The notes under the pieces: generated by a model
What the model saw: only the letters and a program-made list of their open reading frames with translations
Databases searched by the model: none
Told to the model about the DNA's origin: nothing
Shown: positions 14,668-62,398 of the stretch, one piece after another
Layout: each line of letters opens with the position of its first letter
How positions within the stretch are numbered: position 1 is the stretch's first letter
IMG/VR virus record: IMGVR_UViG_3300042934_000594
Span: 1-64,000 of that record
DNA: 64,000 nt
Direction: 5' to 3' (one strand)
Program-made: the position numbers and the translations under genes

Positions 14668-17154
<2,487 letters not shown>

Positions 17155-17155
<1 letters not shown>

Positions 17156-31529: not shown

Positions 31530-32723
31530 TTACAGCACCAGTTCGAAGTCTTCGTTGTCATCGTCACGCGACAACAGGTTAACCTTGTACTGAGCGTTCT
31601 GCTCCTCCTGTGGGGCGCTCTGAGACGCGCTGACGTCCAGGTAGTCCAACATGAAGGGCAATGGGTTGGTCTGTGGGAATTCGTGCCCACGGGCGATCAG
31701 GTCCTGCTCTACGCCCATGAACACTGCCGCAGCGCGACCGTTGAACTTGTTCCAGCGTTTACCGTGACTCAAGGTAAAGCCTGGCAGTTCGTTGCCTGAG
31801 CTGAATAGGTACTCCAACCAAGTGTCTTCGCTGTTGAGGATCTCATCCAACAGGTTGACGATCATCGGTTTGCACTGCTGGTACGCGATACGGCCGCGCT
31901 CGGTGGCCAGTTCGATGCGCAGCACTTCCTGACCGAACTGAGCGTGGATCTCGAACTCGTCCTGGGCAATACGCTCCACCGCTTTACCAATCGGTTGGAA
32001 CAGGCCGGTGCGGCACACCGCGAAGGTGATGGCGAACGAGGACATGAACTGCACGCGCTCCAGGAAGTACATGGCCACCAGGAACATGAAGATGGCGTTG
32101 TACGACTCTTGATCGGCTTCCACCTGACCCAAGGCGTATTTGTGGCTGACTTCATGAGCACGACCCATGACCTGGGCCACCGACGTCAGGCGCGACATGG
32201 CTTCCTTGACTTCCAGGATTTCTTTGAGCACTTCATCCGGGTTGTCGAAGCTGGAACGCACGATCTCCGAGTACGTCAGGCCGTGAACGTTTTCGTTCTC
32301 GTTGATCTTGACGTAACCGCACCAGAGTTCAGTCGAGCTGCACACCGGGCCCATGATCGTCGCAATGGCCCGTGAGGCCATCGAGTCGGCTTCCCACTGC
32401 CAGGCCAACGTCTTGATCATGAAGTCGGCGCAGATACGCCCTGTAGGGTCACTGGTGGCAAACTCCACGTTACAGCTGGAGTAGTCGAACTCGTTTTCGT
32501 CCCAGTCGAGCGAGCGCAGCGTTTTGTACAACGACCACAGCTGGGGGTACTGCTTGTTGATGGTGTCCAGTAGACCACCCTCTTGACCGAAGAACAGCGG
32601 GGTGCGTTCGTAGTCGGTTTTCTGGGTGTTGAAGATCTTGGCCGGCAGGGCAGACGGTGGTGCGTAGCCCCGGGAAGGTTCGTGGGGTAGTTCGGAATCG
32701 GGTTGGAATTCGCGGTCAGTCAT
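31530..32723 (-). CDS. nrdB: ribonucleotide reductase class Ia beta subunit
   Basis: EADS, ENVHGLTY (E..H..Y radical Tyr), FLE...FM.SF, DEFEIH. Confidence 0.95.
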   Translation of the reverse strand: MTDREFQPDSELPHEPSRGYAPPSALPAKIFNTQKTDYERTPLFFGQEGGLLDTINKQYPQLWSLYKTLRSLDWDENEFDYSSCNVEFATSDPTGRICADFMIKTLAWQWEADSMASRAIATIMGPVCSSTELWCGYVKINENENVHGLTYSEIVRSSFDNPDEVLKEILEVKEAMSRLTSVAQVMGRAHEVSHKYALGQVEADQESYNAIFMFLVAMYFLERVQFMSSFAITFAVCRTGLFQPIGKAVERIAQDEFEIHAQFGQEVLRIELATERGRIAYQQCKPMIVNLLDEILNSEDTWLEYLFSSGNELPGFTLSHGKRWNKFNGRAAAVFMGVEQDLIARGHEFPQTNPLPFMLDYLDVSASQSAPQEEQNAQYKVNLLSRDDDNEDFELVL

Positions 32724-32783
32724 GAATGGTCTCGGATCAAGAGGGTATAGAGAGTGGGGACCCGTAGGTCCCCACTCGGGGGT

Positions 32784-35258
32784 TCACAGTGCGCAGGCAC
32801 CGGAGGCACAATTGGCTTCGCTGGTATTGTTGGCTACCGCTGTTTCCATGTGCTCCAAGTCCAGCCCTTCGGCGGTCTCGCAGTTCTGGTAATAGCGGGT
32901 CTTCAGGCCCATCTTGACCATGTACAGGTAATCGCGAATCATCTCGGTCGAGGTAATCTTCTCGTCTTTGATGATGCGACGGAACAGGTCAGCACTGATG
33001 GCTTGGTCGGTGAACTTCTGGAACAGCGCGTAGCAGTCGATCATGTCCTTGGTGGGAATGTCCCAGGCCATTTCGTACTCGTAGTCAGGATCATCGCCAA
33101 ACGGCGCTGCCCAACGGATCGAGTTCTGCTCGTCGGTCTTCTTCAAGATCTTGCGACGGATCGGGTAGATGCTGTTGGTCAAGCCGGCAGCTTTGGACGA
33201 CGACTCACCTGGCATGAAGTTCACCAGGCAGCTGTGTGCAATACCACCGTTTTCAATGACGCGTTGCTTCTGACCGGCCCAGTCGTAGGTCAGTGAGAAC
33301 TCACCGATCGAGTCGACGTTACGGTTGTAGGTGTCCAGAGGGGACCAACCCTCAGGCCACTTGGTCTTGTGGATCCATGGCGCCAGGCCACGCTCCTTGG
33401 AGATCATCAGCGAGGCTTCGATCGCCATGTACATGTGACGCTCGGCCAGCCAGTGAATCTCTTGTTTGCCGGCAATCGAGGAGTACTTGAGCTTGTTGCG
33501 GGCCATGTGTGTGGCCAGCCCCATCATGCCCATGCCAGCGTTCATGCGTTGCTTGGCCGTAAAGCCCACATGCGGCAGCGGGTAGATCGACTTACCGATG
33601 GTGTAGTCAATCATTTTGTACCCGTAGTACATCACTTCCTGGTACTGCGCATCGTTTTCGATGTTGTCGACGCAGGTGGCACCCAGTGAGCACATGGCCA
33701 CTTCAGGCTGCTGCGTACGTTCCAGGACTTCCACCACGTCGTGAACGATGGCCTCGTTACGGGCGGTGAAGCGATCACCGACCTGCAAGTCGATGGCCGA
33801 ACGAACGATACCGCGCTGTTTGCCGTTTTCCAGCACAACCGGTTCCCACGCGTCCAGGATGTACTCGCCGCCATCCGTGTCACGCCAGGAGAACACACCG
33901 ACTTCACGGTCGGAGTAGACGTGTTCCATCTTGTAATACGGGTTGGTCGGCTCGGTCACTTCAGCGCACAGGTTCGAGGACCAGATGGTTTCCTTGAACG
34001 GGGTGTGGCGGTTGATCTCGTCCATGAAGGACAGGTAAGCCGTACCGGTTTCGTACGCTTCGTTGAGCGAGGTCAGCAACAGCTCACGGGCGTCGAAGTA
34101 GTTCTTGACGAACAGTGGATCGGCTTCGTACTTCTCGTACAGTGCGATGAAGTGACTCAGGTCTGCACTGTAGAAGGCCTGGAACAGATCCGGTGCCGTC
34201 TTGCAGCTCCAGGAGAAGATCTGACGCTCTTCTGGGGTTTTCTTCGCAACCTTGGAGGCGAAGAATTTGTTCTGCATCATGTTGTAATGCAGGTCGCGGT
34301 TCTGCTTGTCCACAGTCTGACGTGGATTACGCAGCTGGACCAGGAAGTCCGCTTCCGGGTCGAATGCATTGAAGTACATGGTGCCTGCGCCACCACGACC
34401 GTTTTTGGTGTTGGCCAGGACCGACTTGGCGATGTCAGCGATGTACGCTTTCTTGCCCAAGTGTTTGATGGTGCCATTGCGCACCGGCTCACCCACGCCA
34501 CGGGTCACCAGGTTCACACCGATGCCGGCGTTGGCTTGGGTCATGATGTTGGCAATGTAGCTGGTGATCGCCAGGGACTGGCCGTCGTCACCGGACACCA
34601 GTAGGCAGCAGGACGCCAGGCCTGGACGTGGGGTTCCGAAGTCAACGTAGTTAGGGGTCGGGGCACTCAGGCGTTTAGCCGAAAGGTGCTCGTACCACTT
34701 GGCCAGGTGCTTCATGCGCACATCGCGCGGTTCGTCTTCTGCCATGGCCATCGCCATACGCATGTACATGAACTGCTGAGTTTCGAACTCCTCGCCAGTG
34801 ACGCGGTTCTTCAGTGCGTACTTCTCACGGCTGTGGTGCAGCGAGAAGTGTGGGCAGTGGTAATCGCGGTCGTGGTCGATCAGCTCTTCGACCATCGCGT
34901 ATTCGGCGTCGGAGTAATCCAACTTGGCCATGATGCCGCGAAATGCCAGACGCGAATGCAGGGCTTTAACGGTCGGTACCTTACCGCCGTAGATTTTCTT
35001 GAAGAGGTAGGCCGCGTAAAGACGCCCTGCCATTTTGTAGGACGACCAGGTGCGCTGATCCAGGCACTCTTCGATCAGCCCCAGTTGAAAGTCCTGACTT
35101 GTGACCTTTTCCGGCATGTGGCGCACGGTGTTTGCCACAATGGAGGTCCAATCAACCTTGTCTCCCAGGTTTTCAGCTGCCCACTCCCCCCAGCCGTTTG
35201 CTTTTTGGGGCATGAAAGCCTGTTCGGAGCCATCAAGTTTGACAATAGTCTTGATCAT
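32784..35258 (-). CDS. nrdA: ribonucleotide reductase class Ia alpha subunit with about 70-aa insertion
   Basis: N-terminal ATP cone, ASCC, SNLCAE, EVAMCSL, MP.ESSS, KTRYY, C-terminal CASGAC. Confidence 0.97.
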   Translation of the reverse strand: MIKTIVKLDGSEQAFMPQKANGWGEWAAENLGDKVDWTSIVANTVRHMPEKVTSQDFQLGLIEECLDQRTWSSYKMAGRLYAAYLFKKIYGGKVPTVKALHSRLAFRGIMAKLDYSDAEYAMVEELIDHDRDYHCPHFSLHHSREKYALKNRVTGEEFETQQFMYMRMAMAMAEDEPRDVRMKHLAKWYEHLSAKRLSAPTPNYVDFGTPRPGLASCCLLVSGDDGQSLAITSYIANIMTQANAGIGVNLVTRGVGEPVRNGTIKHLGKKAYIADIAKSVLANTKNGRGGAGTMYFNAFDPEADFLVQLRNPRQTVDKQNRDLHYNMMQNKFFASKVAKKTPEERQIFSWSCKTAPDLFQAFYSADLSHFIALYEKYEADPLFVKNYFDARELLLTSLNEAYETGTAYLSFMDEINRHTPFKETIWSSNLCAEVTEPTNPYYKMEHVYSDREVGVFSWRDTDGGEYILDAWEPVVLENGKQRGIVRSAIDLQVGDRFTARNEAIVHDVVEVLERTQQPEVAMCSLGATCVDNIENDAQYQEVMYYGYKMIDYTIGKSIYPLPHVGFTAKQRMNAGMGMMGLATHMARNKLKYSSIAGKQEIHWLAERHMYMAIEASLMISKERGLAPWIHKTKWPEGWSPLDTYNRNVDSIGEFSLTYDWAGQKQRVIENGGIAHSCLVNFMPGESSSKAAGLTNSIYPIRRKILKKTDEQNSIRWAAPFGDDPDYEYEMAWDIPTKDMIDCYALFQKFTDQAISADLFRRIIKDEKITSTEMIRDYLYMVKMGLKTRYYQNCETAEGLDLEHMETAVANNTSEANCASGACAL

Positions 35259-36559: not shown

Positions 36560-36931
36560 ATGAAAACTCAACACGTGTACGCCAAAATTGCCGCCGCCCT
36601 GTGGGTGACGTTTCTGCAACAAGAAATCCCCACCAGTGAACCGGCTGAGCTGAAGATGTTGACAGTCACCCTGAAGGATCAGATGTTGACGGTGGACGTT
36701 AAGACCCGTCGTGAAACCGACCCTACCCAGTCCGACTACACCTTCACCTATCCCGTGGGTGAAACCAGTCGTCGTGAAGTGGTGATCCAACTGTTGAGCC
36801 AGATCCTGGAAGAGCTGGACGATGTCCCGCAAGACTTGCTGGACCGCAACTTCGTACTCACCGTCAAGGTTTCCCCACAGGAAATCTCCGACATTGACCT
36901 GACTCATACCGAACCTGGATCCGATGACTAA
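36560..36931 (+). CDS. hypothetical protein
   Basis: GAGGA RBS; preceded by TATGTAAC (36530-36537). Confidence 0.75.
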   Translation: MKTQHVYAKIAAALWVTFLQQEIPTSEPAELKMLTVTLKDQMLTVDVKTRRETDPTQSDYTFTYPVGETSRREVVIQLLSQILEELDDVPQDLLDRNFVLTVKVSPQEISDIDLTHTEPGSDD

Positions 36932-37430
36932 GCTCTGTGTGATTGTAGCGGTTTCTGAAAACCACGTCATTGGTCGCAATGGCAAACTCCCCTGGCACTT
37001 TCCTGAAGACCTTAAGCACTTTAAGGACGTGACCATGGGTTGCCCGGTGATCATGGGACGTAACACCTTCGAAGACATCGGACGGCCATTGCCCGGTCGC
37101 AAGAACATCGTGGTCACCAGTCGTCCACTGGAACACGAGCATCCTGACCTGGTACGCGTGGCCTCGTTGCCTGAGGCCATGGCGCTGGTACAGAGCAGTC
37201 GGGCGGCTAAAGCGTTCTTCATTGGTGGTGAACGGATCTTCCGGGACGGTCTGCGCTGGGCGACGGAAGTTTACTTGACGCGAGTGACGGGTAAATTTGA
37301 CGGTGATCGTTTCCTGGACCTGTCGAACTTGCGCGAAACCTTTCGCCGGGTGGAGTCCACGTTTGTGATTTCTGAATCACCCCGAAACCCTGGGATGGTT
37401 GGGCACTTCGAACGCTGGGTTCGGCATTGA
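36924..37430 (+). CDS. folA: dihydrofolate reductase
   Basis: VIG.NGKLPWH.PEDLKHFK..T, IMGR.TF, RPLP.RKNIVVTS, IGG. Confidence 0.96.
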   Translation: MTKLCVIVAVSENHVIGRNGKLPWHFPEDLKHFKDVTMGCPVIMGRNTFEDIGRPLPGRKNIVVTSRPLEHEHPDLVRVASLPEAMALVQSSRAAKAFFIGGERIFRDGLRWATEVYLTRVTGKFDGDRFLDLSNLRETFRRVESTFVISESPRNPGMVGHFERWVRH

Positions 37431-38048: not shown

Positions 38049-40214
38049 TTATGCTGCGTAGCGCATAGGACTGCCGTGTCCCAGACGTTTGGTACGCAGT
38101 TTACGCAGACGGTCGTTGTGTGCCTGTTGCAGCATGGCATCGATACCGACACCCCCTGACTCAGTCACATCCACCACCTGCGACAAGCGACGCAGTTTCA
38201 TCTCCAAGCGTGCAACCGACATCATGTCCTTGCAGCTCTTGAGTTCTTCCAGTGCTTCGTCGAACTCAGCACGTTGACGGGCAGTGCGCTGTTCACGGTA
38301 GATGTCCAGCTGACTCATTTCCTCTTCACGGCGCAAGGCCTTGGCGAAGATGCGTTGCGAGTCAATCCCGTAGTAGTCCAGGTTCTTGGACAAGATGCAG
38401 AACCAGTGCGCCAACAGGAAGCTGACCACCATGTCATCGTGGTTACCGCTGGAGTGATCCAGACGACCGTTCTTGATCGTGAGCGACAACAGCTCATTGA
38501 TCAGGATGTTGTCGTGCACCCGCTTGACCCCGTATTCCAACATCGACTTAAACGCAGTATTGAACAACGCATCGCGCGAATGGCCCCCACTCGACGAGGT
38601 GTTGAACCCAAAGTGACGTTTGAAGCGATCGTAGAAGTAGGGCTGTCGTTGGTTAACCGGCAACTGGATTTCACGGAACTCCGTTGCAAACTCTTCCCGA
38701 CTGTCCACGATGCGGTTGTACAAACGCTTGAACGGGTCAACCCCGGCTTTGGTCAGCTGAATGATCAGCATGTCCAAGATCGAGATGCCTGAGGACTTGC
38801 GTTCAATCACCAGCGTGGTGCGTGGGTAACGCAGCAGGAAGTTACCGATGAACTGCGCCAGTACCGGCAGACTCGTTTCGTTGTAGCGACCGGTTGCCAG
38901 CACATCGTGCGTTTCGGTGTCGATCATCACAAAACCGGTGGCGTCGTTGTCTTTGCCCAGGGCTTCGGAGGGGTCGATACCAATGACGCAGGTGGAGCGG
39001 GCCATCCGCTCAGCGATGTCCAGCTTACCGATGTACCAGCGCACGATGTAGCCTTCAGGCGAGATCTCGGTGTACTCAGGCTCACGCTCCGATTCCTTGA
39101 TCATGCGCTTCTCATCAGGCCCCAACGGCCCGCCTTCGGTACCGGCAGTCCAGATGTTGAAGTAGTCGCGGTCGGCCAGTTCCCCCGTGGAGGCGGTTTC
39201 ACGCAGTTCCTGGTAGAGCCATTCATCCGTCTTACCCAACTGACGGTGGTTAAACGGCCCATAGATCAACGGCTTACTGCCCGAGTTCTTCTCGATGACC
39301 CGTTTGAGGGCGGCCTGGTTAGGCTGATCGAAGTAATGCTCGGTCCACGGTGCGCCGCCTGTCATGAACTGGTAGGCGTACTGACCGTCACGGCTGTTGA
39401 TCGAGCCTGCCGTTGTGGTGAAGATGTTACCGTAAGGCTGGCCAGCGTTCTTGGCTTCCAGACGCGCAGCAGAACCCGACGACAGGGCTACAGGCAACGA
39501 GGCGGCGATCCAGTTGATGTACGACAGCTCGTCGAACTGCATGATCGGTACGGTCAAACCACGACCGAGTTTGTCCGCTTCTTTCTTGTCGTTACGACCC
39601 ACGGCCGTCTTGTACTTGTTGCCCAAGCGGATGCAGGTGATCAGCTCCTGGTTATCGGCGTCCAGGGCGTTCTTGCGGTACAAGTAATCAGGCAGCAAGT
39701 CACGCATGTCTTTCAAGCGGTCAACGTTGGAGTTGCGCAGCTTGATGTCCTTGGTGATCAGAACGATGTCGGTGTTCTCACACCAGATGTGCATCAACCC
39801 GTTCATCAGGACGTCAGTGGATGCTGACTTACCTGTTTGACGGGGCTGGAGCAACCCGAAGTCGACGTGGTTGAAGAAACTCCAATACAGTGCGATGTTT
39901 CCGCGGTTGGCTCGGAAACGGATCGGCACGGTACCGGCGTTCGGAGGTAGGCGCGCCACTTCACGAAAGAAGTACCAGGGGTTGTACTTACATTCCCGGG
40001 AAATCATGAACTGCTGTTCCATCGTCAGGTTCGGGTCAAATGGATCGACCCCACTGAGTTCAGGCTGATACAGCGCCAAGATAAATTCACAGTTTTCAAT
40101 GCCTTGCTTTTTGTACAGGGCCACTGTACGCAGGAAGGACTTGTTCGTGGTGTTGTAGTCCACCACCGCGGTTGGGAACTTAGCCCAGTCCGACTTAAAC
40201 AGAATCATGTCCAT
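38049..40214 (-). CDS. terL: terminase large subunit (phiKZ gp25-like)
   Basis: Walker A PRQTGKS, Walker B MQFDE, nuclease IGIDP and HDD motifs; 721 aa. Confidence 0.93.
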   Translation of the reverse strand: MDMILFKSDWAKFPTAVVDYNTTNKSFLRTVALYKKQGIENCEFILALYQPELSGVDPFDPNLTMEQQFMISRECKYNPWYFFREVARLPPNAGTVPIRFRANRGNIALYWSFFNHVDFGLLQPRQTGKSASTDVLMNGLMHIWCENTDIVLITKDIKLRNSNVDRLKDMRDLLPDYLYRKNALDADNQELITCIRLGNKYKTAVGRNDKKEADKLGRGLTVPIMQFDELSYINWIAASLPVALSSGSAARLEAKNAGQPYGNIFTTTAGSINSRDGQYAYQFMTGGAPWTEHYFDQPNQAALKRVIEKNSGSKPLIYGPFNHRQLGKTDEWLYQELRETASTGELADRDYFNIWTAGTEGGPLGPDEKRMIKESEREPEYTEISPEGYIVRWYIGKLDIAERMARSTCVIGIDPSEALGKDNDATGFVMIDTETHDVLATGRYNETSLPVLAQFIGNFLLRYPRTTLVIERKSSGISILDMLIIQLTKAGVDPFKRLYNRIVDSREEFATEFREIQLPVNQRQPYFYDRFKRHFGFNTSSSGGHSRDALFNTAFKSMLEYGVKRVHDNILINELLSLTIKNGRLDHSSGNHDDMVVSFLLAHWFCILSKNLDYYGIDSQRIFAKALRREEEMSQLDIYREQRTARQRAEFDEALEELKSCKDMMSVARLEMKLRRLSQVVDVTESGGVGIDAMLQQAHNDRLRKLRTKRLGHGSPMRYAA

Positions 40215-41056: not shown

Positions 41057-41788
41057 ATGTTTCGTCGTCTGGTCGTAGAACAACGCCACCCCATGCAACG
41101 CGAAGAGGCGTTGTTGGTGGCCCATGCAGAAACCCTGGGTATCCCTGTTGAAGGGGTGTACCTCAAACACATGTCGCGTGGTTTCGTACGACCGGGCTCT
41201 GCGGATCTAGTGGCGGGAACGATCCAGTTCATGCAACACGCCGTGCGCCAGTATGGCAAAGAACTGGCTGAGCACACGCCATACCCCGAGTGCCTGAAAC
41301 CTTTCATGCACCGTAAGACTTGGCAACTGGACACCTTGGCTCAAGCCAAGGCCATGCTCGACAGCGGTCGCAAGTTCTTCATCAAGCCTGTGCACTGGAA
41401 AGTGTTCACCGGCTTTGTGGCTGAATACAGCGATGACTTTCGTTTCAACGGGGTGTCTAACCAGACGCCTGTGTATTTGTCTGAGGTCGTAGAGTTCATC
41501 GCCGAGTACCGAGCCTACGTGGCCCATGGTGAAGTCTTGACCGTGGAGTTTGCGGGAGGGGATGAACGCTGCGGAATGATTCCTCATCCTACCATCTTTG
41601 AAGCGGTGAAGATCCTGACGCAACACGGTGTGCCTGCGGGCTACGCCATTGACTTCGGGATCCTGACCACCGGCCAAACGGCACTGGTGGAACTCAACGA
41701 TGGTTTCTCCATCGGGGCTTACGGCAACATCACCGCCGAGCAATATTGGAAAGTGATCGCAGCACGCTGGCCAGAACTCATTAAATAG
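41057..41788 (+). CDS. ATP-grasp domain protein (DUF4343 / R2K-like)
   Basis: FIKP...K.FTG, SEVV....EYR.YV, AIDFG, LVELND. Confidence 0.8.
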   Translation: MFRRLVVEQRHPMQREEALLVAHAETLGIPVEGVYLKHMSRGFVRPGSADLVAGTIQFMQHAVRQYGKELAEHTPYPECLKPFMHRKTWQLDTLAQAKAMLDSGRKFFIKPVHWKVFTGFVAEYSDDFRFNGVSNQTPVYLSEVVEFIAEYRAYVAHGEVLTVEFAGGDERCGMIPHPTIFEAVKILTQHGVPAGYAIDFGILTTGQTALVELNDGFSIGAYGNITAEQYWKVIAARWPELIK

Positions 41789-41801: not shown

Positions 41802-42182
41802 ATGGCCACACCCTTTCTGGACGAACTGGCAGCACTGTACATGGGGGTGTCTTCGGTCACCCCCGAGTGTCTGATCACCTTCCGTCCTAGGCAACAACCT
41901 GCCAACAATGAATACGCCCTGAAGGCCTTTACGGCTGACGGGGGTCACATGAAACTGGACGGCTACAGTTACTACACCCAGGTTAAGGGGACGTTGGTAC
42001 TGGTGCTGTCCCGCGACTCCCTGCGGCGCAATAACCATCTGGAGATAGCCTTCTACCTACACCGCAAAGGCGGTTGGTTAATGGACTACCCCAGTGCGTT
42101 GCGTTCCACGGACTTACCTCGGGAAGACTTTGAAATCTTCCAGAACCTGTTGTTAACGTTTCAGCGCAGCATGGTGCCTTAG
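41802..42182 (+). CDS. hypothetical protein
   Basis: GAGG RBS. Confidence 0.7.
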   Translation: MATPFLDELAALYMGVSSVTPECLITFRPRQQPANNEYALKAFTADGGHMKLDGYSYYTQVKGTLVLVLSRDSLRRNNHLEIAFYLHRKGGWLMDYPSALRSTDLPREDFEIFQNLLLTFQRSMVP

Positions 42183-42215
42183 GGCACCGTTCCATACCCT
42201 TCGAGGAGCAACACT

Positions 42216-43991
42216 ATGGCAGAAGAGAAACCCGTCATCGTCAGCGGTGACTATTATACCGCGTTGGAGAAAGCAGCCCCAGGACGGCATATTCGTCCTG
42301 AAGGGACCGCTGGCGAAGTCCACGTCACAGAGCGTAGTATTCCGATGCGCTCTCAAGGGGAAAGCGAGACCCGGCTTCCGCTGGGTAACGATGTCATCAT
42401 CAACAACATCCCAACCTTCAATCGCATGAACCACGGGCGTTTGCTGGAGAAACACCTGACAGAAATGGGGGGTTACAAGAATCAACCCAAGAACAACCCT
42501 GACGGCCGAGGGATGATCAATCCGTTTGACAGCTTTGCTGACCGCACGGGTCTGCTGCCTTCGCCTGAAGGAGACGAAGATCCAGAAGAAGAAGCGCTGA
42601 TGGCTGCATCACCTCTGTACAACCAGAAGTTTGTCGACATCCGCGACGTCATGGCGCAACTGCGTGACGAGCAGCCTGAAGGGTGGGAGCAGCAAGTAGC
42701 TGAGATGCAAGACTACCTGGACAACGTCCAGAAGCGCTTCTTTCCCCAAGAAGAACCCATTGACATGGAGGTACTGGCGCAGAAAGTGGCAGACGGGGAA
42801 CGACTGACCCCCTTGGAACACCGCGCTTACATCGAGCACATCTTGCAGGCGAATGAACTGACGTCAGCCGGTAAAACCCTGCTGACCGCAGCCACCCCAC
42901 TGTCGGACACGGAGTACGTGAACCGCAAGCTGCAATTGGGTGGCGTCCCGGAAGAAGAGACTTTAAGTTCTGCGCAGGAGAAGAAAGAACGGCGTAAGCT
43001 GGCCAATCGCGAACGCAAGATTGAAGCACGCATGGCTCAGGGCATGTCTCGTGAAGAGGCTGAGCGCAGCCTGGATTACAACTCCACTGCACTTAAGGAC
43101 AACTTGGCCCTCCAGCGCGATCTGGCGTTTGATAACGATCTGTTTAACCGGCGTTACGCCAGTCCGTTGCTCAAGGCACAGGCGTACGAGGAGCACATCG
43201 AAAGCATCCTGGAGACCAAGCCCTTTGGTTGGGAGCAGCGGATCATCACCTTGCGTAAGCAGCAGGCGGAGTTGTTAGCCCCTGTAGCCCCTGTGGTCGC
43301 CGTAGAGCCGCCCCCACCGCCACCGGTACTGGACTTCAGCACTGAAGACCTGGAATTGCCTGAGCGCTTTATCATCAAGGATCTGGAAGGCTTTAAGTTT
43401 GAGCCAGACACAAAGTTTGATGGGCTGCGCTTGCCGTACGAGTCGTGCTTGTTTGTGTTGGGTGAAGAACCGTTGCGTGCGGTGGTCTTGGCCACTCAGG
43501 AAGACGAAGACGTCATCAGTCTGAAATTGCTGTCCGAACAAAAGGCTGAATTGCCGTGGCACTCGATGGCCACGCTTTATGTCCGTCTGAACGGTAGCCG
43601 GGCTCGGCTTAAATGGGCTAACACCAAACGCACGCTGGACAAGCGTTTGGGCATGGTGTCGTCGGTCTTGGCGTTTCTGGCCGGTGAGCAGATCGGTGAC
43701 GTGGAAATCGAAACCGTGATCAACGCACCGATGGGTCGTGAGATCCCTCCACCGAAACCTGGCTACAGCTACAGCGTGGTCAGCATTGTTCACGAGCAAC
43801 GCAAAGCCAAGCGTCGGGACTGGCAGGGCGGTACGCATGCCTCACCACGGGAACACAAACGCAAAGGTCACTGGTGGCCGGGTAAGAAGGGCCTGATCTG
43901 GCGTCCCGCTACGATCGTTAACAAGGGTGTACTCGGCCGAGTCGAGAAAGAATACCACGTCACTAAACTAGAGGGAGGCCACGATGCCTAA
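42216..43991 (+). CDS. multidomain accessory protein with N-terminal RNAP-beta-like fragment and C-terminal SPREH.R.GHW motif
   Basis: EK..PGRH...DVIIN....NRMNHGRLLEKHL; C-terminal THASPREHKRKGHWW. Confidence 0.8.
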   Translation: MAEEKPVIVSGDYYTALEKAAPGRHIRPEGTAGEVHVTERSIPMRSQGESETRLPLGNDVIINNIPTFNRMNHGRLLEKHLTEMGGYKNQPKNNPDGRGMINPFDSFADRTGLLPSPEGDEDPEEEALMAASPLYNQKFVDIRDVMAQLRDEQPEGWEQQVAEMQDYLDNVQKRFFPQEEPIDMEVLAQKVADGERLTPLEHRAYIEHILQANELTSAGKTLLTAATPLSDTEYVNRKLQLGGVPEEETLSSAQEKKERRKLANRERKIEARMAQGMSREEAERSLDYNSTALKDNLALQRDLAFDNDLFNRRYASPLLKAQAYEEHIESILETKPFGWEQRIITLRKQQAELLAPVAPVVAVEPPPPPPVLDFSTEDLELPERFIIKDLEGFKFEPDTKFDGLRLPYESCLFVLGEEPLRAVVLATQEDEDVISLKLLSEQKAELPWHSMATLYVRLNGSRARLKWANTKRTLDKRLGMVSSVLAFLAGEQIGDVEIETVINAPMGREIPPPKPGYSYSVVSIVHEQRKAKRRDWQGGTHASPREHKRKGHWWPGKKGLIWRPATIVNKGVLGRVEKEYHVTKLEGGHDA

Positions 43992-44724
43992 AGTAGCCAA
44001 GAGTAACCAAGCTTTCAAGATTATCGCCATCAATGTACCCCCTATTGGGGCACCTGAAGATGATACGTACCACCTGATCGGGCAAGAGCTGACTCAGCTC
44101 CTCAGTATCCCTAAAGAAGTCTACGACGTTTGGCAGCCGAAGATTGGTGGTTGGGTGGATTTCGAAAACACCACTCGCGGTTGTCAGCCCGGAGCCTACC
44201 CAGAGGCGATGGCTGTTTACCGTGAAGACCTTCTGCCCAACACCGTGGGGGACTTTGATGGGGACAGTCTGGGGGACCCTCTCAAGAAACCTGTTAACTT
44301 CAGCCGTTTGGACAAACTGTTCGAATACTCCAACGGTCGCAAGGACCCTTCGGTGCTGAACCTGGTTCAATCCATGCGGGTCTTCACCCGCCGGCATGGT
44401 GGTGCTTATGGCGCCATGCTGATCAACAACCGTGATCACGGTAACGATGCGTTCGAGATGATCGCTGAAGACTACGGCCTGAGTCATCACTTGAGCCAAC
44501 GCCCATGGTTCCCCTACCGTGAATCCGACACCGCCACGGGGGCAATCACTGCCCTGATGGACTTCCTCAATAACGAACTGACCCAAGATCGCGAGCAATT
44601 GATCAACTGGTCTGTCAACTGCGCCTTGTTTGAGTACAAGCTCAGTCAAGGCGGTGATGGTTACTACGACATCGCCACCGGCTGGTGCCTGAGCGCCGAA
44701 GAAGCTTACGCCCCACAGAAATAA
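43984..44724 (+). CDS. hypothetical protein
   Basis: GGAGG RBS; overlap. Confidence 0.75.
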   Translation: MPKVAKSNQAFKIIAINVPPIGAPEDDTYHLIGQELTQLLSIPKEVYDVWQPKIGGWVDFENTTRGCQPGAYPEAMAVYREDLLPNTVGDFDGDSLGDPLKKPVNFSRLDKLFEYSNGRKDPSVLNLVQSMRVFTRRHGGAYGAMLINNRDHGNDAFEMIAEDYGLSHHLSQRPWFPYRESDTATGAITALMDFLNNELTQDREQLINWSVNCALFEYKLSQGGDGYYDIATGWCLSAEEAYAPQK

Positions 44725-52236: not shown

Positions 52237-52372
52237 GACCTGGGCTTCCAAAAGGGTTGTGAAAAATAACTAACGTTACTTCTATGCGCAGTTATTGGTT
52301 AATATTTATGGATTGACTGTAGTTAACGCTCATAACATCGAGTTGCTTTGCTCCAAACCTGGGAGATACACA

Positions 52373-54463
52373 ATGGGTACCACGAACGCCTCTCCAAAGA
52401 TTGTCTTTGGGGGTATCGACGATCAGTCCCGGCGGCCGCTCGCGCGTCCCGCTGTGACTTTCGCGCAACACGCCCCGCTGCTCCGTCTGTTTGCTCAGAC
52501 CGGGCCTGAGACCACTGAATGGGTGGGCACCGAATCTGGTGGTTTCGCTTCACTCTACGGTGCGCTGACCCTGGCCCGTCGTGGTCAGTATTACAACCTT
52601 CAGTCGATGCTGGCTGAAAAGCTCCTGGGTGAGGGTAACGGCTTTGCAGTCAAACGCCTGATTCCAGACGATGCGCCTGCACCTGCGCGCATCATCATCG
52701 CACTCGAGCTGGTGCGTGACGCCATCCCTGCCACGACCGTGGCGCTGTCTGGGTTTGACTACCCGGAAGATGTGGCTGACGTCAGCGGTAATACCGCTCA
52801 AGCTCAAGCCGTCGGCGACACCGTCAATGGCCTGCGTGCTCGCATCATCACCATCCAGGACAACCAGTCGGGCGTGGGTAAGCAACGCGTTCTGCCAGGT
52901 ACTCTGGTGGCTGAATCCGATTCGACTCAGTCGATGGTTTACCCGCTGTTCGAATTGCCGGCTTCTTTTGTCGGCAGTGGCGGTAACCTGCTCGGCTGGC
53001 GCGCATGGGCGCCCACCACGCAAGACGACATCGGTTTCGACGAAACCACCGCTGCTCAGTTCAAGACCCGCATGTACCGCATGCAGTTCTTGCAGCGTGC
53101 CACCAGCTCGGCTTCCCCGGCTGTGGTCAAGACTGCCCTGGGTGACGACTACGTTGACGTCTGCTTCACTGAAGGCGCCTACAGCGAGTCCACTGACAAA
53201 GAATACTACATCGGCCAGACGCTTGTTCAAGCGTACAAGGACGACGGTTTGGACAGCGGCCTGGCGCCCCTGTACTCCCCGTTCGAAAAGATCTACGTCT
53301 ATAAGGACAACATCAAAACTGTCCAGGACCTGATCTACGAAGTAGAGCTGGAAGTCAACCCGGCTGCTCAGGCCCTGATCGCGGCCCCTGGCCAGATCGA
53401 TTTCCTGACCGGTACCGGTATCGACGGCGACCTGTACCAGGGCATCCTGTTCGAAGGTCCGCTCAACGGCGGCATCAAGCTGGGTGACCAGACCACTGTT
53501 TATGCAGTGGGTGGCGGTGACGGTACCACCGACCTCGCCATGTACGAGAAGTTGGTCAACCTGGAAAACGACAACTTCGGTCAGCTCAAAGACCAGTACG
53601 AAAACTTGGCGGTCTTCCCGTTCACTCGTCTGTACGACACTGGCCTGTCCATGGACGGCAAGTATCGCATGATGGGTGTGCTGGGCAAGCGTCAGGACCT
53701 GATGCTGACCTTCACCACGTACGTGGAAGCAGAAGGTGTGGCACCGACGGCGTCTGAAGAGCTGTCCCGTGCGCAAGCCCTGACCACGCGTCTGAAGGCG
53801 TTCCCTGAGTCGACGCTGTATGGCACTCCAGTGTGCCGTGCTGAAATCATCATGCAAACCGGTTACCTGGCAGGCGGTGGTTACACCAAGCCTGTGCCAC
53901 AGGTCATCGACTACGCCGTACGTTGGGCTCGCTTCGGCGGTGCTGGCAGCGGCAAGATGCGTGAAGGCTTCGACATCGACGTCAGCCCGAACAACCGTGT
54001 GACTGAGATCAAAGACCACAACGTCAAGTATTTCAACGCACGGGCGCAATCCAACGCCTGGGTCAACGGTGGTTCGTACTCGTTGTCTTACGACAACCGC
54101 AGCATGTACTACCCGGCGATCCACACCGTCTACAACGACGACACCTCGGTGTTGACCTCGCCGATCACCACGTCGATCTGCTGCGACCTGATGCGCCTGT
54201 CGCGTCTGGTACACGCTGATTTCTCCGGTAACGCCAAGCTGACCGATGAGCAATTCATCGAGCGCTGCGATGCGCGCCTGCTGGCTCTGGTGGACGGTCG
54301 TTACAACGGTCGTGTGGACCTGGTACCCACCACGTACTTCACCGCTGATGACAAGAACAATGGCTTCAGCTGGCACGTGAAGTGGGAAGTCCGTGCGAGC
54401 GTGCCTCGTACCGTGATGTACCTGGACATCATCACCGAACGTCGGGACTCCGTTGCGGCGTAA
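52373..54463 (+). CDS. tail sheath protein (phiKZ gp29-like)
   Basis: NA.PKIVFGGIDD.S, QH.PL, YDTG; 696 aa upstream of tube gene. Confidence 0.88.
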   Translation: MGTTNASPKIVFGGIDDQSRRPLARPAVTFAQHAPLLRLFAQTGPETTEWVGTESGGFASLYGALTLARRGQYYNLQSMLAEKLLGEGNGFAVKRLIPDDAPAPARIIIALELVRDAIPATTVALSGFDYPEDVADVSGNTAQAQAVGDTVNGLRARIITIQDNQSGVGKQRVLPGTLVAESDSTQSMVYPLFELPASFVGSGGNLLGWRAWAPTTQDDIGFDETTAAQFKTRMYRMQFLQRATSSASPAVVKTALGDDYVDVCFTEGAYSESTDKEYYIGQTLVQAYKDDGLDSGLAPLYSPFEKIYVYKDNIKTVQDLIYEVELEVNPAAQALIAAPGQIDFLTGTGIDGDLYQGILFEGPLNGGIKLGDQTTVYAVGGGDGTTDLAMYEKLVNLENDNFGQLKDQYENLAVFPFTRLYDTGLSMDGKYRMMGVLGKRQDLMLTFTTYVEAEGVAPTASEELSRAQALTTRLKAFPESTLYGTPVCRAEIIMQTGYLAGGGYTKPVPQVIDYAVRWARFGGAGSGKMREGFDIDVSPNNRVTEIKDHNVKYFNARAQSNAWVNGGSYSLSYDNRSMYYPAIHTVYNDDTSVLTSPITTSICCDLMRLSRLVHADFSGNAKLTDEQFIERCDARLLALVDGRYNGRVDLVPTTYFTADDKNNGFSWHVKWEVRASVPRTVMYLDIITERRDSVAA

Positions 54464-59656: not shown

Positions 59657-59665
59657 GGAGTGGAT

Positions 59666-60934
59666 ATGACTGATGAGAAGCGCCCCCTGATCCTGTGGTC
59701 CGGGGGTTTGGATTCAACGTTCCTGATGTACCAACAGCTGCTCAATGGGCCGGTGGATTACATTGTCATGGACGGGGGTCAAAGCCGGTCTAAGATCCGC
59801 ATGGAGGAGGAAGCGCGCACCAAGGCACTGAATTGGTTCGCTGCGCAGGGCCTGCCCTACCCGCATCAATTGAACACGGCCGATCCCATGACGCTGGCTA
59901 AGATGCCCGGCATCAGTTGGTCGCAAACGATCCCGTGGTTGATCGGTGCGTTGTATGCCGCGGACCATCGTAAGCACCACAGTGTGATGATCGCCTACGT
60001 GATCGGTGATGAACCAGTGCACCTGAAGGACGTCTTCAGTCAAACCTTCGAAGGCCTGCAACGGATTTCCAAACACGGTGACCCCGTTCCCCTGTGCTTC
60101 CCGTTCCTGGATGGGTTCGTCAACAAGCGCCGGATCTTGCACGAGATCCCCCGTGGCCTGCTCGAGTGCGTCTGGTACTGCGAGCTGCCTGAGAAAATCA
60201 ACGTCACCCCGTGTCAGTTTGAGATGGTCAGTGGCAAGCGGTGTGAATGGAAGGCTAACGATCAGTTGGTGATTGAGGTCATCCAGGAAGGGGATGTGGA
60301 ACGCGTCGAATTGAGTGCGCTTTACCTTCAACCTGAACACCGGGTGGTCATGCCCGACGGCTCTGTCGAGGTGGTCAGCAAAGCGGTCGAGCAAATCGAC
60401 AACGTGTACATCTGGCAGCGTTGCAATAACTGTCCGGCGTGTGTGACGCATGACCTGGAACTGGTGCGCTATCAGCGCCTGGGTAAACACATCGGCTATC
60501 GCAAGGATGTGGGCGTGGAGGATCCTGTACCTGCCCCGGGTAAAGAGCTGCCACCCCCGGACGCCACCGTGTTCCTGGTGGCCACCGCTGAGCAAGTCTT
60601 GACCATCGCGCAAAGCGGTCTCACCGCCGGCACCCAGTTCCACGCCACCTCAGAACAGGCCGCCCTGGAAGTCAACAACTGGCTGGCGGGTGGGTTCCCA
60701 GGGGACGACATCCGCGTGATCGAAGTGGACTACCATTCGGGCATGCGTGGGCAAGACGCTCCAGCCAAAGACTGGATCTTAGACTGTGCGTTGAGCACAG
60801 GTTTCATCCGCCGCCTGCGCGATCGCAATGGCACCCAACTGCTCTGGCCCGTCCCGTGGGAAGAAACAAGCACCCCGGACGACGTCGTCGAGCAACTCGT
60901 CGAACTGGCAAACACACTCAAAGAGGAGGTCTAA
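59666..60934 (+). CDS. QueC-like PP-loop ATPase with 80-aa spacer in the Zn site and C-terminal ART/Tpt1-like domain
   Basis: ILWSGGLDST PP-loop; WYC...CNNCPAC Zn ligands; extra about 120-aa C-terminal domain. Confidence 0.75.
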   Translation: MTDEKRPLILWSGGLDSTFLMYQQLLNGPVDYIVMDGGQSRSKIRMEEEARTKALNWFAAQGLPYPHQLNTADPMTLAKMPGISWSQTIPWLIGALYAADHRKHHSVMIAYVIGDEPVHLKDVFSQTFEGLQRISKHGDPVPLCFPFLDGFVNKRRILHEIPRGLLECVWYCELPEKINVTPCQFEMVSGKRCEWKANDQLVIEVIQEGDVERVELSALYLQPEHRVVMPDGSVEVVSKAVEQIDNVYIWQRCNNCPACVTHDLELVRYQRLGKHIGYRKDVGVEDPVPAPGKELPPPDATVFLVATAEQVLTIAQSGLTAGTQFHATSEQAALEVNNWLAGGFPGDDIRVIEVDYHSGMRGQDAPAKDWILDCALSTGFIRRLRDRNGTQLLWPVPWEETSTPDDVVEQLVELANTLKEEV

Positions 60935-61361: not shown

Positions 61362-61459
61362 AGAAACACCCGTAGCAATGTAGTATGTAACAAACCCTTT
61401 CCCTTCAGCCAGACGCGGTGCGTCTGGTTTATTTCCTCACTGTAACTAGGAGTTTCACC

Positions 61460-62398
61460 ATGTCTAAGATCAAAGCCCGTCTGTACAACTGCGGTGGTGC
61501 CGGTACTGACCTCGGCCTGCAAGTGCAGTCGGACACGTTCACCAAGTGCTACGTCGATGCCAGCGACTCCAACCTCAAAGAAGGCATGGACAAAGCAGAC
61601 TGCTTCTTCATCCCAGGTTTGAAAGGATCGGGCAAGAACCGCGCTGAAAACGCCAAGATCATCGCGCCGATCATCCCTGAGATCATGGATGCTCACGAGC
61701 CAGGTGAATTCAACGTCGTGGTGTACTCGCTGGCCGGCGGCAGCGGTTCGGTGATCGGTCCGTACATCGTGCGCTACCTGTTGGAACAGAACCTGCCGGT
61801 GATCTCGGTAGTGATCGGTGTCACCGATTCGGCGACCGACATCAAGAACAGCATGAACACGCTCAAAACCCTGGAAGCGTTCTCGGCGGCTACCCGCTTG
61901 CCGGCGGTGGTCAACTACCACGAAAACGTGTCGGGCCAACCACAGCGTATCACCGACCAGAGCGTACTGTTCTGCCTGGAAGCTTTGGGCGACCTGTTGA
62001 CTCAGGAAAACGATCGTCTGGACTTGATGGACCTGACCAACGCGGTTCAGTTCCACAAGGTCACCCCGATCCCGGCGCAGTTGGCCTACATGGGCATCTT
62101 CGACAATCGTCAGTCGGCCACGCAAGTGCCTGAACCGATCGTCACCGTGTCGCTGTACCAAGACCCGGACAAGAACATCGCCGTGGGTCAACCACACGTG
62201 GCGTACGCCGGTCTGCCGCGCAACGAGATCACCTCCGAGCAGCTGCACTTCATCGTCAACACCGCGACCATGGAACAGATCACCACCGATCTGATCACCA
62301 GTCAAACGGCGTTGAACCAGAAGCTTGGCGGTTACCGCAGTCGTAAGCCGGTGGTCTCGGTCGACGACAACATGGCGGCCGATGGCCTGGTGCTCTAA
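61460..62398 (+). CDS. phuZ: PhuZ tubulin-like spindle GTPase
   Basis: CGGAG, G.GSGK.R, GGGSGS signature, D..D (RLDLMD) T7 loop, acidic C-terminal tail DDNMAADGLVL. Confidence 0.93.
   Translation: MSKIKARLYNCGGAGTDLGLQVQSDTFTKCYVDASDSNLKEGMDKADCFFIPGLKGSGKNRAENAKIIAPIIPEIMDAHEPGEFNVVVYSLAGGSGSVIGPYIVRYLLEQNLPVISVVIGVTDSATDIKNSMNTLKTLEAFSAATRLPAVVNYHENVSGQPQRITDQSVLFCLEALGDLLTQENDRLDLMDLTNAVQFHKVTPIPAQLAYMGIFDNRQSATQVPEPIVTVSLYQDPDKNIAVGQPHVAYAGLPRNEITSEQLHFIVNTATMEQITTDLITSQTALNQKLGGYRSRKPVVSVDDNMAADGLVL

Follow-up and report, generated by a model that had tools for sequence, protein, structure and literature searches.

A predicted AcrVA2/FinQ-like protein with short copies of RNA polymerase motifs in a phiKZ-like jumbo phage

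The anti-CRISPR protein AcrVA2 binds ribosomes and polysomes via its C-terminal part, while the remainder of the molecule recognises the nascent N-terminus of Cas12a, after which a cellular enzyme degrades the translated mRNA (Marino et al.; 2026 summary of the published version). Residues H286, R288 and H291 are needed for this down-regulation of mRNA, not for target binding (Marino et al.). AcrVA2 homologues, whose targets are unknown, are thought to serve conflicts between mobile elements (Marino et al.; 2026 summary); FinQ and FinQ-like proteins of conjugative plasmids are named among them, and homologues in "megaphages" are mentioned without further detail (Marino et al.). In this study we analysed a predicted jumbo-phage member of this family, the 591-amino-acid (aa) product of an open reading frame (ORF) at positions 42216-43991 of a 64,000-nucleotide stretch of DNA (the window; positions 1 to 64,000 of IMG/VR virus record IMGVR_UViG_3300042934_000594). 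The window makes up the first 64 kb of a 269,430-bp JGI (Joint Genome Institute) metagenome contig, with which it shares its coordinates. To our knowledge, AcrVA2 is so far the sole protein of the bacterial world able to read a nascent peptide and to bring about destruction of the mRNA under translation, and we know of no targets for the many homologues found outside Cas12a hosts.

What is new here is that a known family, AcrVA2/FinQ, occurs in an unusual and directly testable architecture: ahead of the core, the protein carries short copies of motifs from the non-virion RNA polymerase (nvRNAP) of phiKZ-like phages. The clade would thereby carry a written hint of its target, in the form of the polymerase's own active-site motifs, and the copies suggest that the protein is aimed at polymerase production.

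The AcrVA2/FinQ-like core

The main parts of the gene and its product are the following (window coordinates):

42216-43991, plus strand: whole ORF, 591 aa (P0001), with a GAGGAG ribosome-binding site at 42203-42208
42576-43283, plus strand: helical middle, residues 121-356; AlphaFold2 (AF2) helices with a predicted local distance difference test score (pLDDT) of 60-87; length variable among relatives
43278-43331, plus strand: Pro-rich linker, residues 355-372, with PPPPPP at 365-370
43311-43988, plus strand: AcrVA2/FinQ-like core, residues 366-591; 70-79% identity within the closest clade
43827-43967, plus strand: C-terminal basic module GGTHASPREH547KR549KGH552WW...VNKG...Y, equivalent to AcrVA2 H286/R288/H291

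The same gene call (42216-43991, plus strand) is present on two public contigs. The protein has 13 metagenomic homologues (E 1e-99 to 1e-174); aligned with one another, they are almost invariant over the last ~230 residues and differ in length and order over the first 360. When 50,697 phage records were searched, megablast of the gene gave no match, and the sole protein match was gp262 of Pseudomonas phage Noxifer; 221 of these records have the tail sheath. Because only Noxifer gp262 matches, the gene is accessory, lying outside the conserved jumbo-phage core.

The C-terminal 226 aa (residues 366-591) are assigned to the AcrVA2/FinQ family by their sequence; the fold scores are low and are only consistent with this assignment. 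A profile of the jumbo-phage clade, built from the 14 closest homologues, matched 442 representatives at E <= 1e-3 among 1.84 billion proteins, most of them stand-alone proteins of ~270 aa that share the last 70-180 residues. P0038, P0047, P0071, P0079 and P0143 were matched at E 7e-10 to 2.5e-6, and each carries the precomputed Pfam family PF26125 (PF26125.1, AcrVA2-like). This family is marked on about one quarter of the 120 matches listed, among which no other Pfam family appears, and weakly on a further relative, P0041. Our own Pfam scan of 60 members returned no PF26125, even in the precomputed carriers; the scanning copy was probably without this model.

The sole match of the core profile in the PDB was AcrVA2 itself (7CI1, residues 285-319; E 6.9), aligned over R-x-H-x-R-R-G-H-W...V-N-x-G. 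This alignment therefore sets H547, R549 and H552 opposite AcrVA2 H286, R288 and H291, and the three columns are invariant or nearly so in alignments of 14 and 60 sequences. An earlier note on this DNA, made from the sequence alone, had recorded the basic motif at the C-terminus as part of an unrelated remainder of the protein; the motif is indeed there, and in our comparisons SPREHKRKGHWW is the signature of the AcrVA2/FinQ family.

AF2 gave a confident model of the core (pLDDT 84.6). The top three Foldseek matches of this model were 7CI1/7CI2 (E 0.03-0.06; TM score 0.22-0.34), and 7CI1 was also first by VIA (Foldseek list; unbiased search of 48,161 chains), with Z 4.6 and a root-mean-square deviation of 5.0 over 153 aa, the whole model being covered. 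Its Z is tied with those of GNAT-type folds (Z 4.0-4.4 over 82-89 aa, i.e. half of the model). The first sub-domain of the core (model residues 373-494) has a weak resemblance to the GNAT/HAT1 acetyltransferase fold (Z 4.0-4.4). A PD-(D/E)xK nuclease, for which E429, D432, E441 and K443 were considered, was rejected: the wider family does not conserve these residues, and the fold searches turned up no nuclease.

The family also extends to plasmids. P0041 matches 248 plasmid records, mostly of conjugative enterobacterial plasmids and including Pseudomonas plasmids; the clusters concerned are all named "hypothetical" and not FinQ, and the plasmid proteins are at most putative FinQ.

The full-length AF2 model is of low confidence (pLDDT 49.7). 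It leaves residues 1-136 disordered (pLDDT ~30) and places helices at 137-356, followed by the proline linker, which bears out the helical middle and Pro-rich linker described from the sequence earlier. Two motifs recur through the middle region of the family, KP.GWE.RI..L (twice in the 591-aa protein, at ~155-175 and ~335-355) and G[ML][ST]..EAE....YN; the latter has a weak YoaH-like match in relative P0019 (NCBIfam E 0.057), and JGI calls P0007 YoaH-like. The repeated helical motifs gave no match to RNA polymerase (RNAP) subunits. Pfam, NCBIfam and PHROGs searches of the whole protein returned sub-threshold noise only, besides two short RNAP matches in PHROGs.

RNA polymerase motifs in the N-terminal extension

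As far as comparison and prediction tell, the N-terminal extension consists of short copies of catalytic-centre motifs from the split nvRNAP of the phage, strung together in a disordered region. Six such motifs (M1-M6) are found in the family. In the 591-aa protein they follow the order listed here, with M5 and M6 absent:

42249-42299, plus strand: residues 12-28, DYYTALEKAAPGRHIRP; probably a decayed copy of M1, containing the "GRH" of the earlier note
42327-42380, plus strand: M2, residues 38-55, TERSIPMRSQGESETRLP; copy of nvRNAP beta-C R..GESETR
42384-42458, plus strand: M3, residues 57-81, GNDVIINNIPTFNRMNHGRLLEKHL; copy of the beta segment D-I-V-L-N...SRMN.GQ.LE.HL of the double-psi beta-barrel (DPBB), the catalytic barrel of RNAP
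42468-42527, plus strand: M1, residues 85-104, GGYKNQPKNNPDGRGMINPF; copy of the C-terminal motif of gp123-type nvRNAP beta-N
42858-42938, plus strand: M4, residues 215-241, ...PLSDTEYVNRKLQL; copy of the nvRNAP beta'-C bridge-helix segment, with a match to phrog_3015

For M1, the collinear match spans residues 73-115 (42432-42560) and reaches E 1.3e-5 against PDB 7OGP chain E, which is phiKZ gp123 (residues 483-524; alignment z 17); its 13-residue core, YKNQPKNNPDGRG, is identical to phiKZ gp123 497-509. The M1 region matched 78 jumbo-phage records, and the annotated ones among the matches listed all lie in the gene of the gp123-type subunit. M2 aligns with nvRNAP beta-C at z 7.5 (0 of 2000 shuffles as good) and corresponds, by position and pattern, to the universal RpoB RFGEME motif (GEME at 1271 of 1342 in E. 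coli). M4 reaches z 5.2; its best placement in E. coli RpoC is the bridge helix (778-800), which is not significant alone. The stretch at residues 12-28 bears a weak likeness to the family motif DY..QPKN.P.GRG.INP (p 0.019 against P0002, 0.009 against P0013 and 0.15 against a third relative).

The earlier note had read residues 18-81 as a single parallel to the RpoB active site. Its second half, RMN.G..LE.HL, stands: the similarity of residues 57-81 (DVIINNIPTFNRMNHGRLLEKHL) to E. coli RpoB 1094-1117 is far beyond chance. When residues 55-84 were compared with the whole 1342-aa E. coli RpoB, the best local alignment fell exactly on 1094-1117 (z 7.5; 0 of 2000 shuffles), and against the beta-C subunit of the phage itself (416-443) the segment gave z 3.4 and p 0.008. 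In the reverse search with RpoB 1040-1140, run against ORFs of at least 120 aa from Noxifer and the window plus proteins of the phage's own nvRNAP region, the 591-aa ORF ranked third (independent E-value 0.07) after two true nvRNAP beta-C subunits. The first half, in which EKAAPGRH had been equated with GDKMAGRHGNKG, does not rise above chance: residues 8-36 gave p 0.32 against RpoB and p 0.39 against the equivalent DGHGGKGVI of the phage's own beta-C. Nor is the interval one collinear RpoB fragment, because residues 38-55 copy a different beta motif, GESETR, which lies ~190 residues further along the subunit. The remainder of the protein, formerly called unrelated, contains two more RNAP-derived motifs (85-104 and 215-241) in addition to the AcrVA2/FinQ signature. 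Besides the chance nature of the GRH match, the earlier description had missed that beta and beta' both served as sources of the copies, and that these are carried by an AcrVA2/FinQ-like domain.

Significant local matches to beta and beta' motifs could in principle mean that the protein is a true part of a split RNAP beta subunit, highly diverged and involved in catalysis. We give this next to no credence, since its anatomy already contradicts it. The fragments are 18-25 aa long, come from both beta and beta', stand in non-native order and are predicted to be disordered; no Pfam RNAP domain was found in the protein. A contiguous beta DPBB region, in which GDK.AGRHGNKG, SRMN.GQ and GEME follow one another in the native order and at the native spacing, is not present: the GESETR copy precedes the SRMN copy without a spacer, within the region predicted to be disordered. 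Full-length homology to the nvRNAP subunit families (gp123, gp71-73, gp74, gp55) was likewise not found, the matching stretches being of 18-43 aa, and complete nvRNAP subunits are encoded elsewhere on the same contig.

The motifs were surveyed in the N-terminal extensions of 26 family proteins, between which their order and number differ. Profile hidden Markov models (HMMs) of the motifs were searched against 2,202 six-frame ORFs, representing the complete Noxifer genome, the window, the phiKZ gp123 locus and E. coli rpoBC, and also against the phage's own beta'-N, beta-C and beta'-C subunits (483, 703 and 663 aa), which were reached by walking along the contig. The top matches are given below without the family proteins themselves:

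M1, Y..QPKN.P.G: 14 of 26 proteins; phiKZ gp123 E 1e-9, Noxifer gp125 (gp123 homologue) E 6e-7
M2, R..GESE.R: 21 of 26; Noxifer beta-C E 2.5e-8; own beta-C 612-629, E 3e-7
M3, SRMN: 9 of 26; E. coli RpoB E 2.1 (weak); own beta-C 428-441, E 0.075
M4, EYFNRK: 25 of 26; Noxifer beta'-C E 5e-7; own beta'-C 238-259, E 3e-5
M5, NADFDG: 18 of 26; nvRNAP beta'-N E 2e-5, virion RNAP E 0.035, E. coli RpoC E 0.05; own beta'-N 409-424, E 2e-6
M6, DI[DN]S.IF (F-loop): 12 of 26; Noxifer beta'-C E 9e-9; own beta'-C 196-208, E 6e-7

These positions agree with those of the cellular enzyme. The phage's own beta-C 386-455 corresponds to E. coli RpoB 1060-1129 (E 6e-9), and its beta'-N 275-427 to E. coli RpoC 332-472, NADFDGD included; in its beta'-C, M4 and M6 are found a short way upstream of the match to the trigger loop, i.e. 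in the position of the bridge helix and F-loop. A phmmer search with whole extensions against the Noxifer ORFs returned the four nvRNAP core subunits as top matches and nothing else of note. At least two motif patterns occur in 24 of 160 family representatives and in three of the 2,202 background ORFs, namely the 591-aa ORF, Noxifer gp262 and the true beta'-C.

Two relatives carry longer pieces. In P0020 (L015 3221-4507) the core is fused to ~76 aa of beta'-C covering the F-loop and bridge helix, and in P0015 (L014 3413-4738) to a fragment of gp123-type beta-N (110 aa by phmmer, ~150 aa by PHROG profile). Both look like earlier stages of the same capture process. The motif copies thus appear to go back to captured fragments of RNAP genes; as to origin, the proposal of the earlier note, a captured piece of a split phage RNAP gene, is borne out by the extension searches, which return nvRNAP core subunits, and by the fragments of ~76-150 aa in relatives. 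In Noxifer, synonymous codons differ between the motif copies and the RNAP genes. Because of these differences, the copies are judged to be old and maintained at the protein level, not by gene conversion, and recent gene conversion from the RNAP genes was rejected. An intein or homing-endonuclease reading was also discarded: no Hint or HNH features were found, and the gene does not adjoin RNAP genes.

In these phages the RNAP genes are hot spots for introns and homing endonucleases. Together with the spliced gp55-56.1 and gp71-73 subunits, this would suit a view of the extension as evolutionary debris, i.e. RNAP fragments captured by illegitimate or homing-endonuclease-linked recombination which form a tolerated leader devoid of function, with the core directed at some other target; the lack of M5 and M6 from the 591-aa protein and the decay of one M1 copy would be in keeping with it. 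Such an origin without function is nevertheless very improbable in our judgement, given that key motif residues are kept across 24 representatives while linkers, motif order and synonymous sites have changed, and that M4 is retained in 25 of 26 proteins.

Possible action on polymerase synthesis

Our preferred reading, to which we lean only tentatively, is that the protein is a ribosome-associated, nascent-chain-directed regulator that uses its RNAP-derived segments to engage RNAP subunits during their synthesis. Following the reports on AcrVA2, the basic C-terminal H-x-R-x-x-H module would place the protein on translating ribosomes, the N-terminal part would select the target emerging from the ribosome, and a cellular RNase would then be recruited to the mRNA under translation. 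The RNAP-derived segments would serve as surrogate surfaces of partner subunits: the six motifs, from four polypeptides, converge at the active centre of the assembled RNAP, which suggests that the copies would engage nascent or unassembled RNAP subunits. The protein might in this manner shut down synthesis or assembly of the multisubunit RNAP. Its likely uses would be the exclusion of a later-arriving or co-infecting related phage and the feedback shut-off of the phage's own early nvRNAP genes.

Motifs taken from all four core subunits and meeting at an inter-subunit active centre would equally suit the idea, put forward in the earlier note, of a stoichiometric poison or regulator of assembly, in which the motif string binds unassembled subunits, at the protein level only, and the AcrVA2-like part is a scaffold. 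It is also in line with this idea that jumbo-phage RNAPs are without an alpha assembly platform, and that nvRNAP import depends on contacts between subunits. We consider it improbable, however. It is the AcrVA2-like core with its functional motif, and not the RNAP motifs, that is most strongly conserved, and the AcrVA2/FinQ-like carrier points to action at the ribosome and nascent chain rather than to simple stoichiometric poisoning. Moreover, the gene is absent from almost all phiKZ-like phages and is therefore not a general assembly factor. The term "RNAP-subunit mimic" fits the protein as a description only. A link to the import factor Imp7 was also considered, and no relation was found in the jumbo-phage import paper.

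The main rival is a decoy or pseudosubstrate, because carrying copies of conserved peptides is decoy behaviour. Here the RNAP-like peptides would be bait for another recogniser of nvRNAP motifs, such as a FinQ/AcrVA2-type nascent-chain sensor encoded by the host, a plasmid or a prophage, or some other defence against the phage polymerase; the conserved C-terminal module would act as a competitor at the same site on the ribosome. Alternatively, the recogniser could be the protein's own peptide-binding core, leading to auto-inhibition or to autoregulation of its own mRNA. Decoys and pseudosubstrates typically take this form, that of copied conserved peptides of a target, and the copies seen here are degenerate: 14 of 18 distinct M5 copies read NADFDGN, in which the third Mg-binding catalytic Asp is replaced by Asn, whereas the true subunits keep NADFDGD. 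The family is common on conjugative plasmids, those of Pseudomonas included, and the N-terminal motifs are the first to leave the ribosome. Against these points, no defence sensing nvRNAP peptides is known, AF2 leaves the N-terminus undocked on the core, and a single, nearly invariant core could hardly bind six unrelated peptides; retention of the functional H-x-R-x-x-H residues argues for an active effector. On balance we regard a decoy as unlikely. If true, this reading would mean that a defence able to sense peptides of the phage polymerase awaits discovery.

Several observations speak against the nascent-chain regulator that we prefer. We know of no precedent for short interface peptides used as bait to catch a target. 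In AcrVA2 the target is recognised by a folded domain and not by peptide copies related to it, and a protein that bears copies of a sequence is, in classical terms, a decoy or pseudosubstrate more than a receptor. Since the phage's own nvRNAP shares these motifs, the protein would have to be timed so as not to harm the phage itself. Nor does the reading account for M3, which is closer to bacterial RpoB (z 7.5) than to the phage's own beta-C (z 3.4). Evidence that ties the core directly to AcrVA2 is weak (PDB E 6.9, Z 4.6, TM 0.22-0.34), a second PDB profile, made from stand-alone family members, gave no match, and the 591-aa protein and its 13 close homologues carry no precomputed Pfam family. 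A complex prediction for the phage's own beta'-N with residues 1-125 scored 0.00, which is not evidence either way.

In a wider proposal, which we put forward as doubtful, AcrVA2/FinQ-type silencers may be re-aimed by capturing fragments of the target complex, the jumbo-phage clade being a natural example in which pieces of all four RNAP core subunits would form the recognition device of a translation-coupled switch, blocking synthesis of the polymerase of a rival phage or of the phage's own early polymerase. Such a rule of captured target fragments was not seen in other long family members, for which Pfam gave nothing and PHROGs gave only families of unknown function and one M4-type RNAP match (P0147). 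If true, the proposal would show how specificity evolves in the AcrVA2/FinQ family, would add a layer of control or conflict over the split, alpha-less RNAPs of nucleus-forming phages, and would suggest a route to programmable, polypeptide-specific gene silencing. The question of the target can be tested in a cultured system, with Noxifer gp262 and P. fluorescens SBW25.

The phage, its neighbouring genes and related systems

By its predicted gene content the source is a phiKZ-like, nucleus-forming jumbo phage (chimallivirus); it is so classed because a PhuZ-like tubulin is encoded in the window and chimallin just downstream. The marker genes are:

38049-40214, minus strand: terminase, a phiKZ-like marker
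52295-54463: tail sheath; phiKZ-type virion proteins are also present in the window
61418-62398, plus strand: PhuZ-like tubulin, within the window
77433-79325 of the contig (L018 16494-18386): chimallin, just outside the window, downstream
79399-80850 of the contig (L018 18460-19911): nvRNAP beta'-N, directly after chimallin

The sheath protein shares only ~55% identity with its closest cultured relatives. Auxiliary genes at 14870-17155, 31530-35258, 36924-37430 and 59660-60934 encode an NAD-dependent DNA ligase, the large and small subunits of a class I ribonucleotide reductase, a dihydrofolate reductase and a QueC-like protein.

Two genes upstream of the 591-aa ORF, in the same gene array, lies a gene for an R2K-clade ATP-grasp protein (41057-41788, plus strand; Pfam R2K_2, E 1.7e-30). 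A perfect 6-bp inverted repeat, GGTGCC-TTAG-GGCACC, occupies 42173-42188; it covers the stop codon of the upstream ORF (41802-42182), ends 28 nt ahead of the start of the 591-aa ORF and is not followed by a T-run. This repeat may be a hairpin for RNA processing or attenuation. Promoter and terminator scans, and a search for the phiKZ early-promoter word TATATTAC, were uninformative on the timing of expression of the 591-aa ORF.

The downstream ORF (43984-44724, plus strand; 246 aa) overlaps the 591-aa ORF at its stop codon and is without a family match. It contains VGDFDGDSL, a faint echo of NADFDGD that is not significant (motif HMM E 1.6). No homology was detected between this ORF and the gene downstream of Noxifer gp262, and no conserved downstream partner gene was found.

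In the full texts that we searched, work on the AcrVA2 family and on jumbo-phage RNAP was found, and none that links the two. AcrVA2, an anti-CRISPR of a Moraxella bovoculi prophage (7CI1/7CI2; PF26125), shares with the 591-aa protein a homologous core of ~220 aa, carriage on a mobile element and the basic ending G-G-T-H-x-S-P-R-x-H-x-R-R-G-H-W...V-N-x-G...Y with its three functional residues. It is ~320 aa long, compared with 591 aa here, and has no counterpart of the extra ~360-aa extension with its RNAP-motif copies, helical region and proline linker. The element that hosts the 591-aa protein also differs, being a nucleus-forming jumbo phage, and nothing indicates that Cas12a is the target. 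FinQ, of the same core family, lowers the mRNA of the transfer genes of a rival plasmid and so provides a precedent for conflict between mobile elements; plasmid proteins of the family (e.g. a 350-aa ORF of L013) are, unlike the 591-aa protein, without RNAP-like motifs.

The source of the copies is nvRNAP of the phiKZ type (gp123 beta-N, gp71-73 beta-C, gp55 beta'-N and gp74 beta'-C; 7OGP), whose corresponding subunits are matched by GESETR, EYFNRK, NADFDG and DI[DN]S.IF. Unlike these subunits, the 591-aa protein has short pieces only, shuffled and lying in predicted disorder. A possible analogy of logic is offered by the autoregulation of tubulin through TTC5 in eukaryotes, where reading of a nascent peptide leads to decay of that mRNA and ties synthesis to the unassembled pool; there is no homology, and the likeness would be one of principle. 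A further counterpart is gp262 of Pseudomonas phage Noxifer (405 aa, annotated as hypothetical), the only homologue in a cultured phage. It differs in its shorter middle region, its core, which is 37% identical, and its place in the genome, and it has the same architecture, in which M1, M2, M3, M4 and M5 are followed by an AcrVA2-like core.

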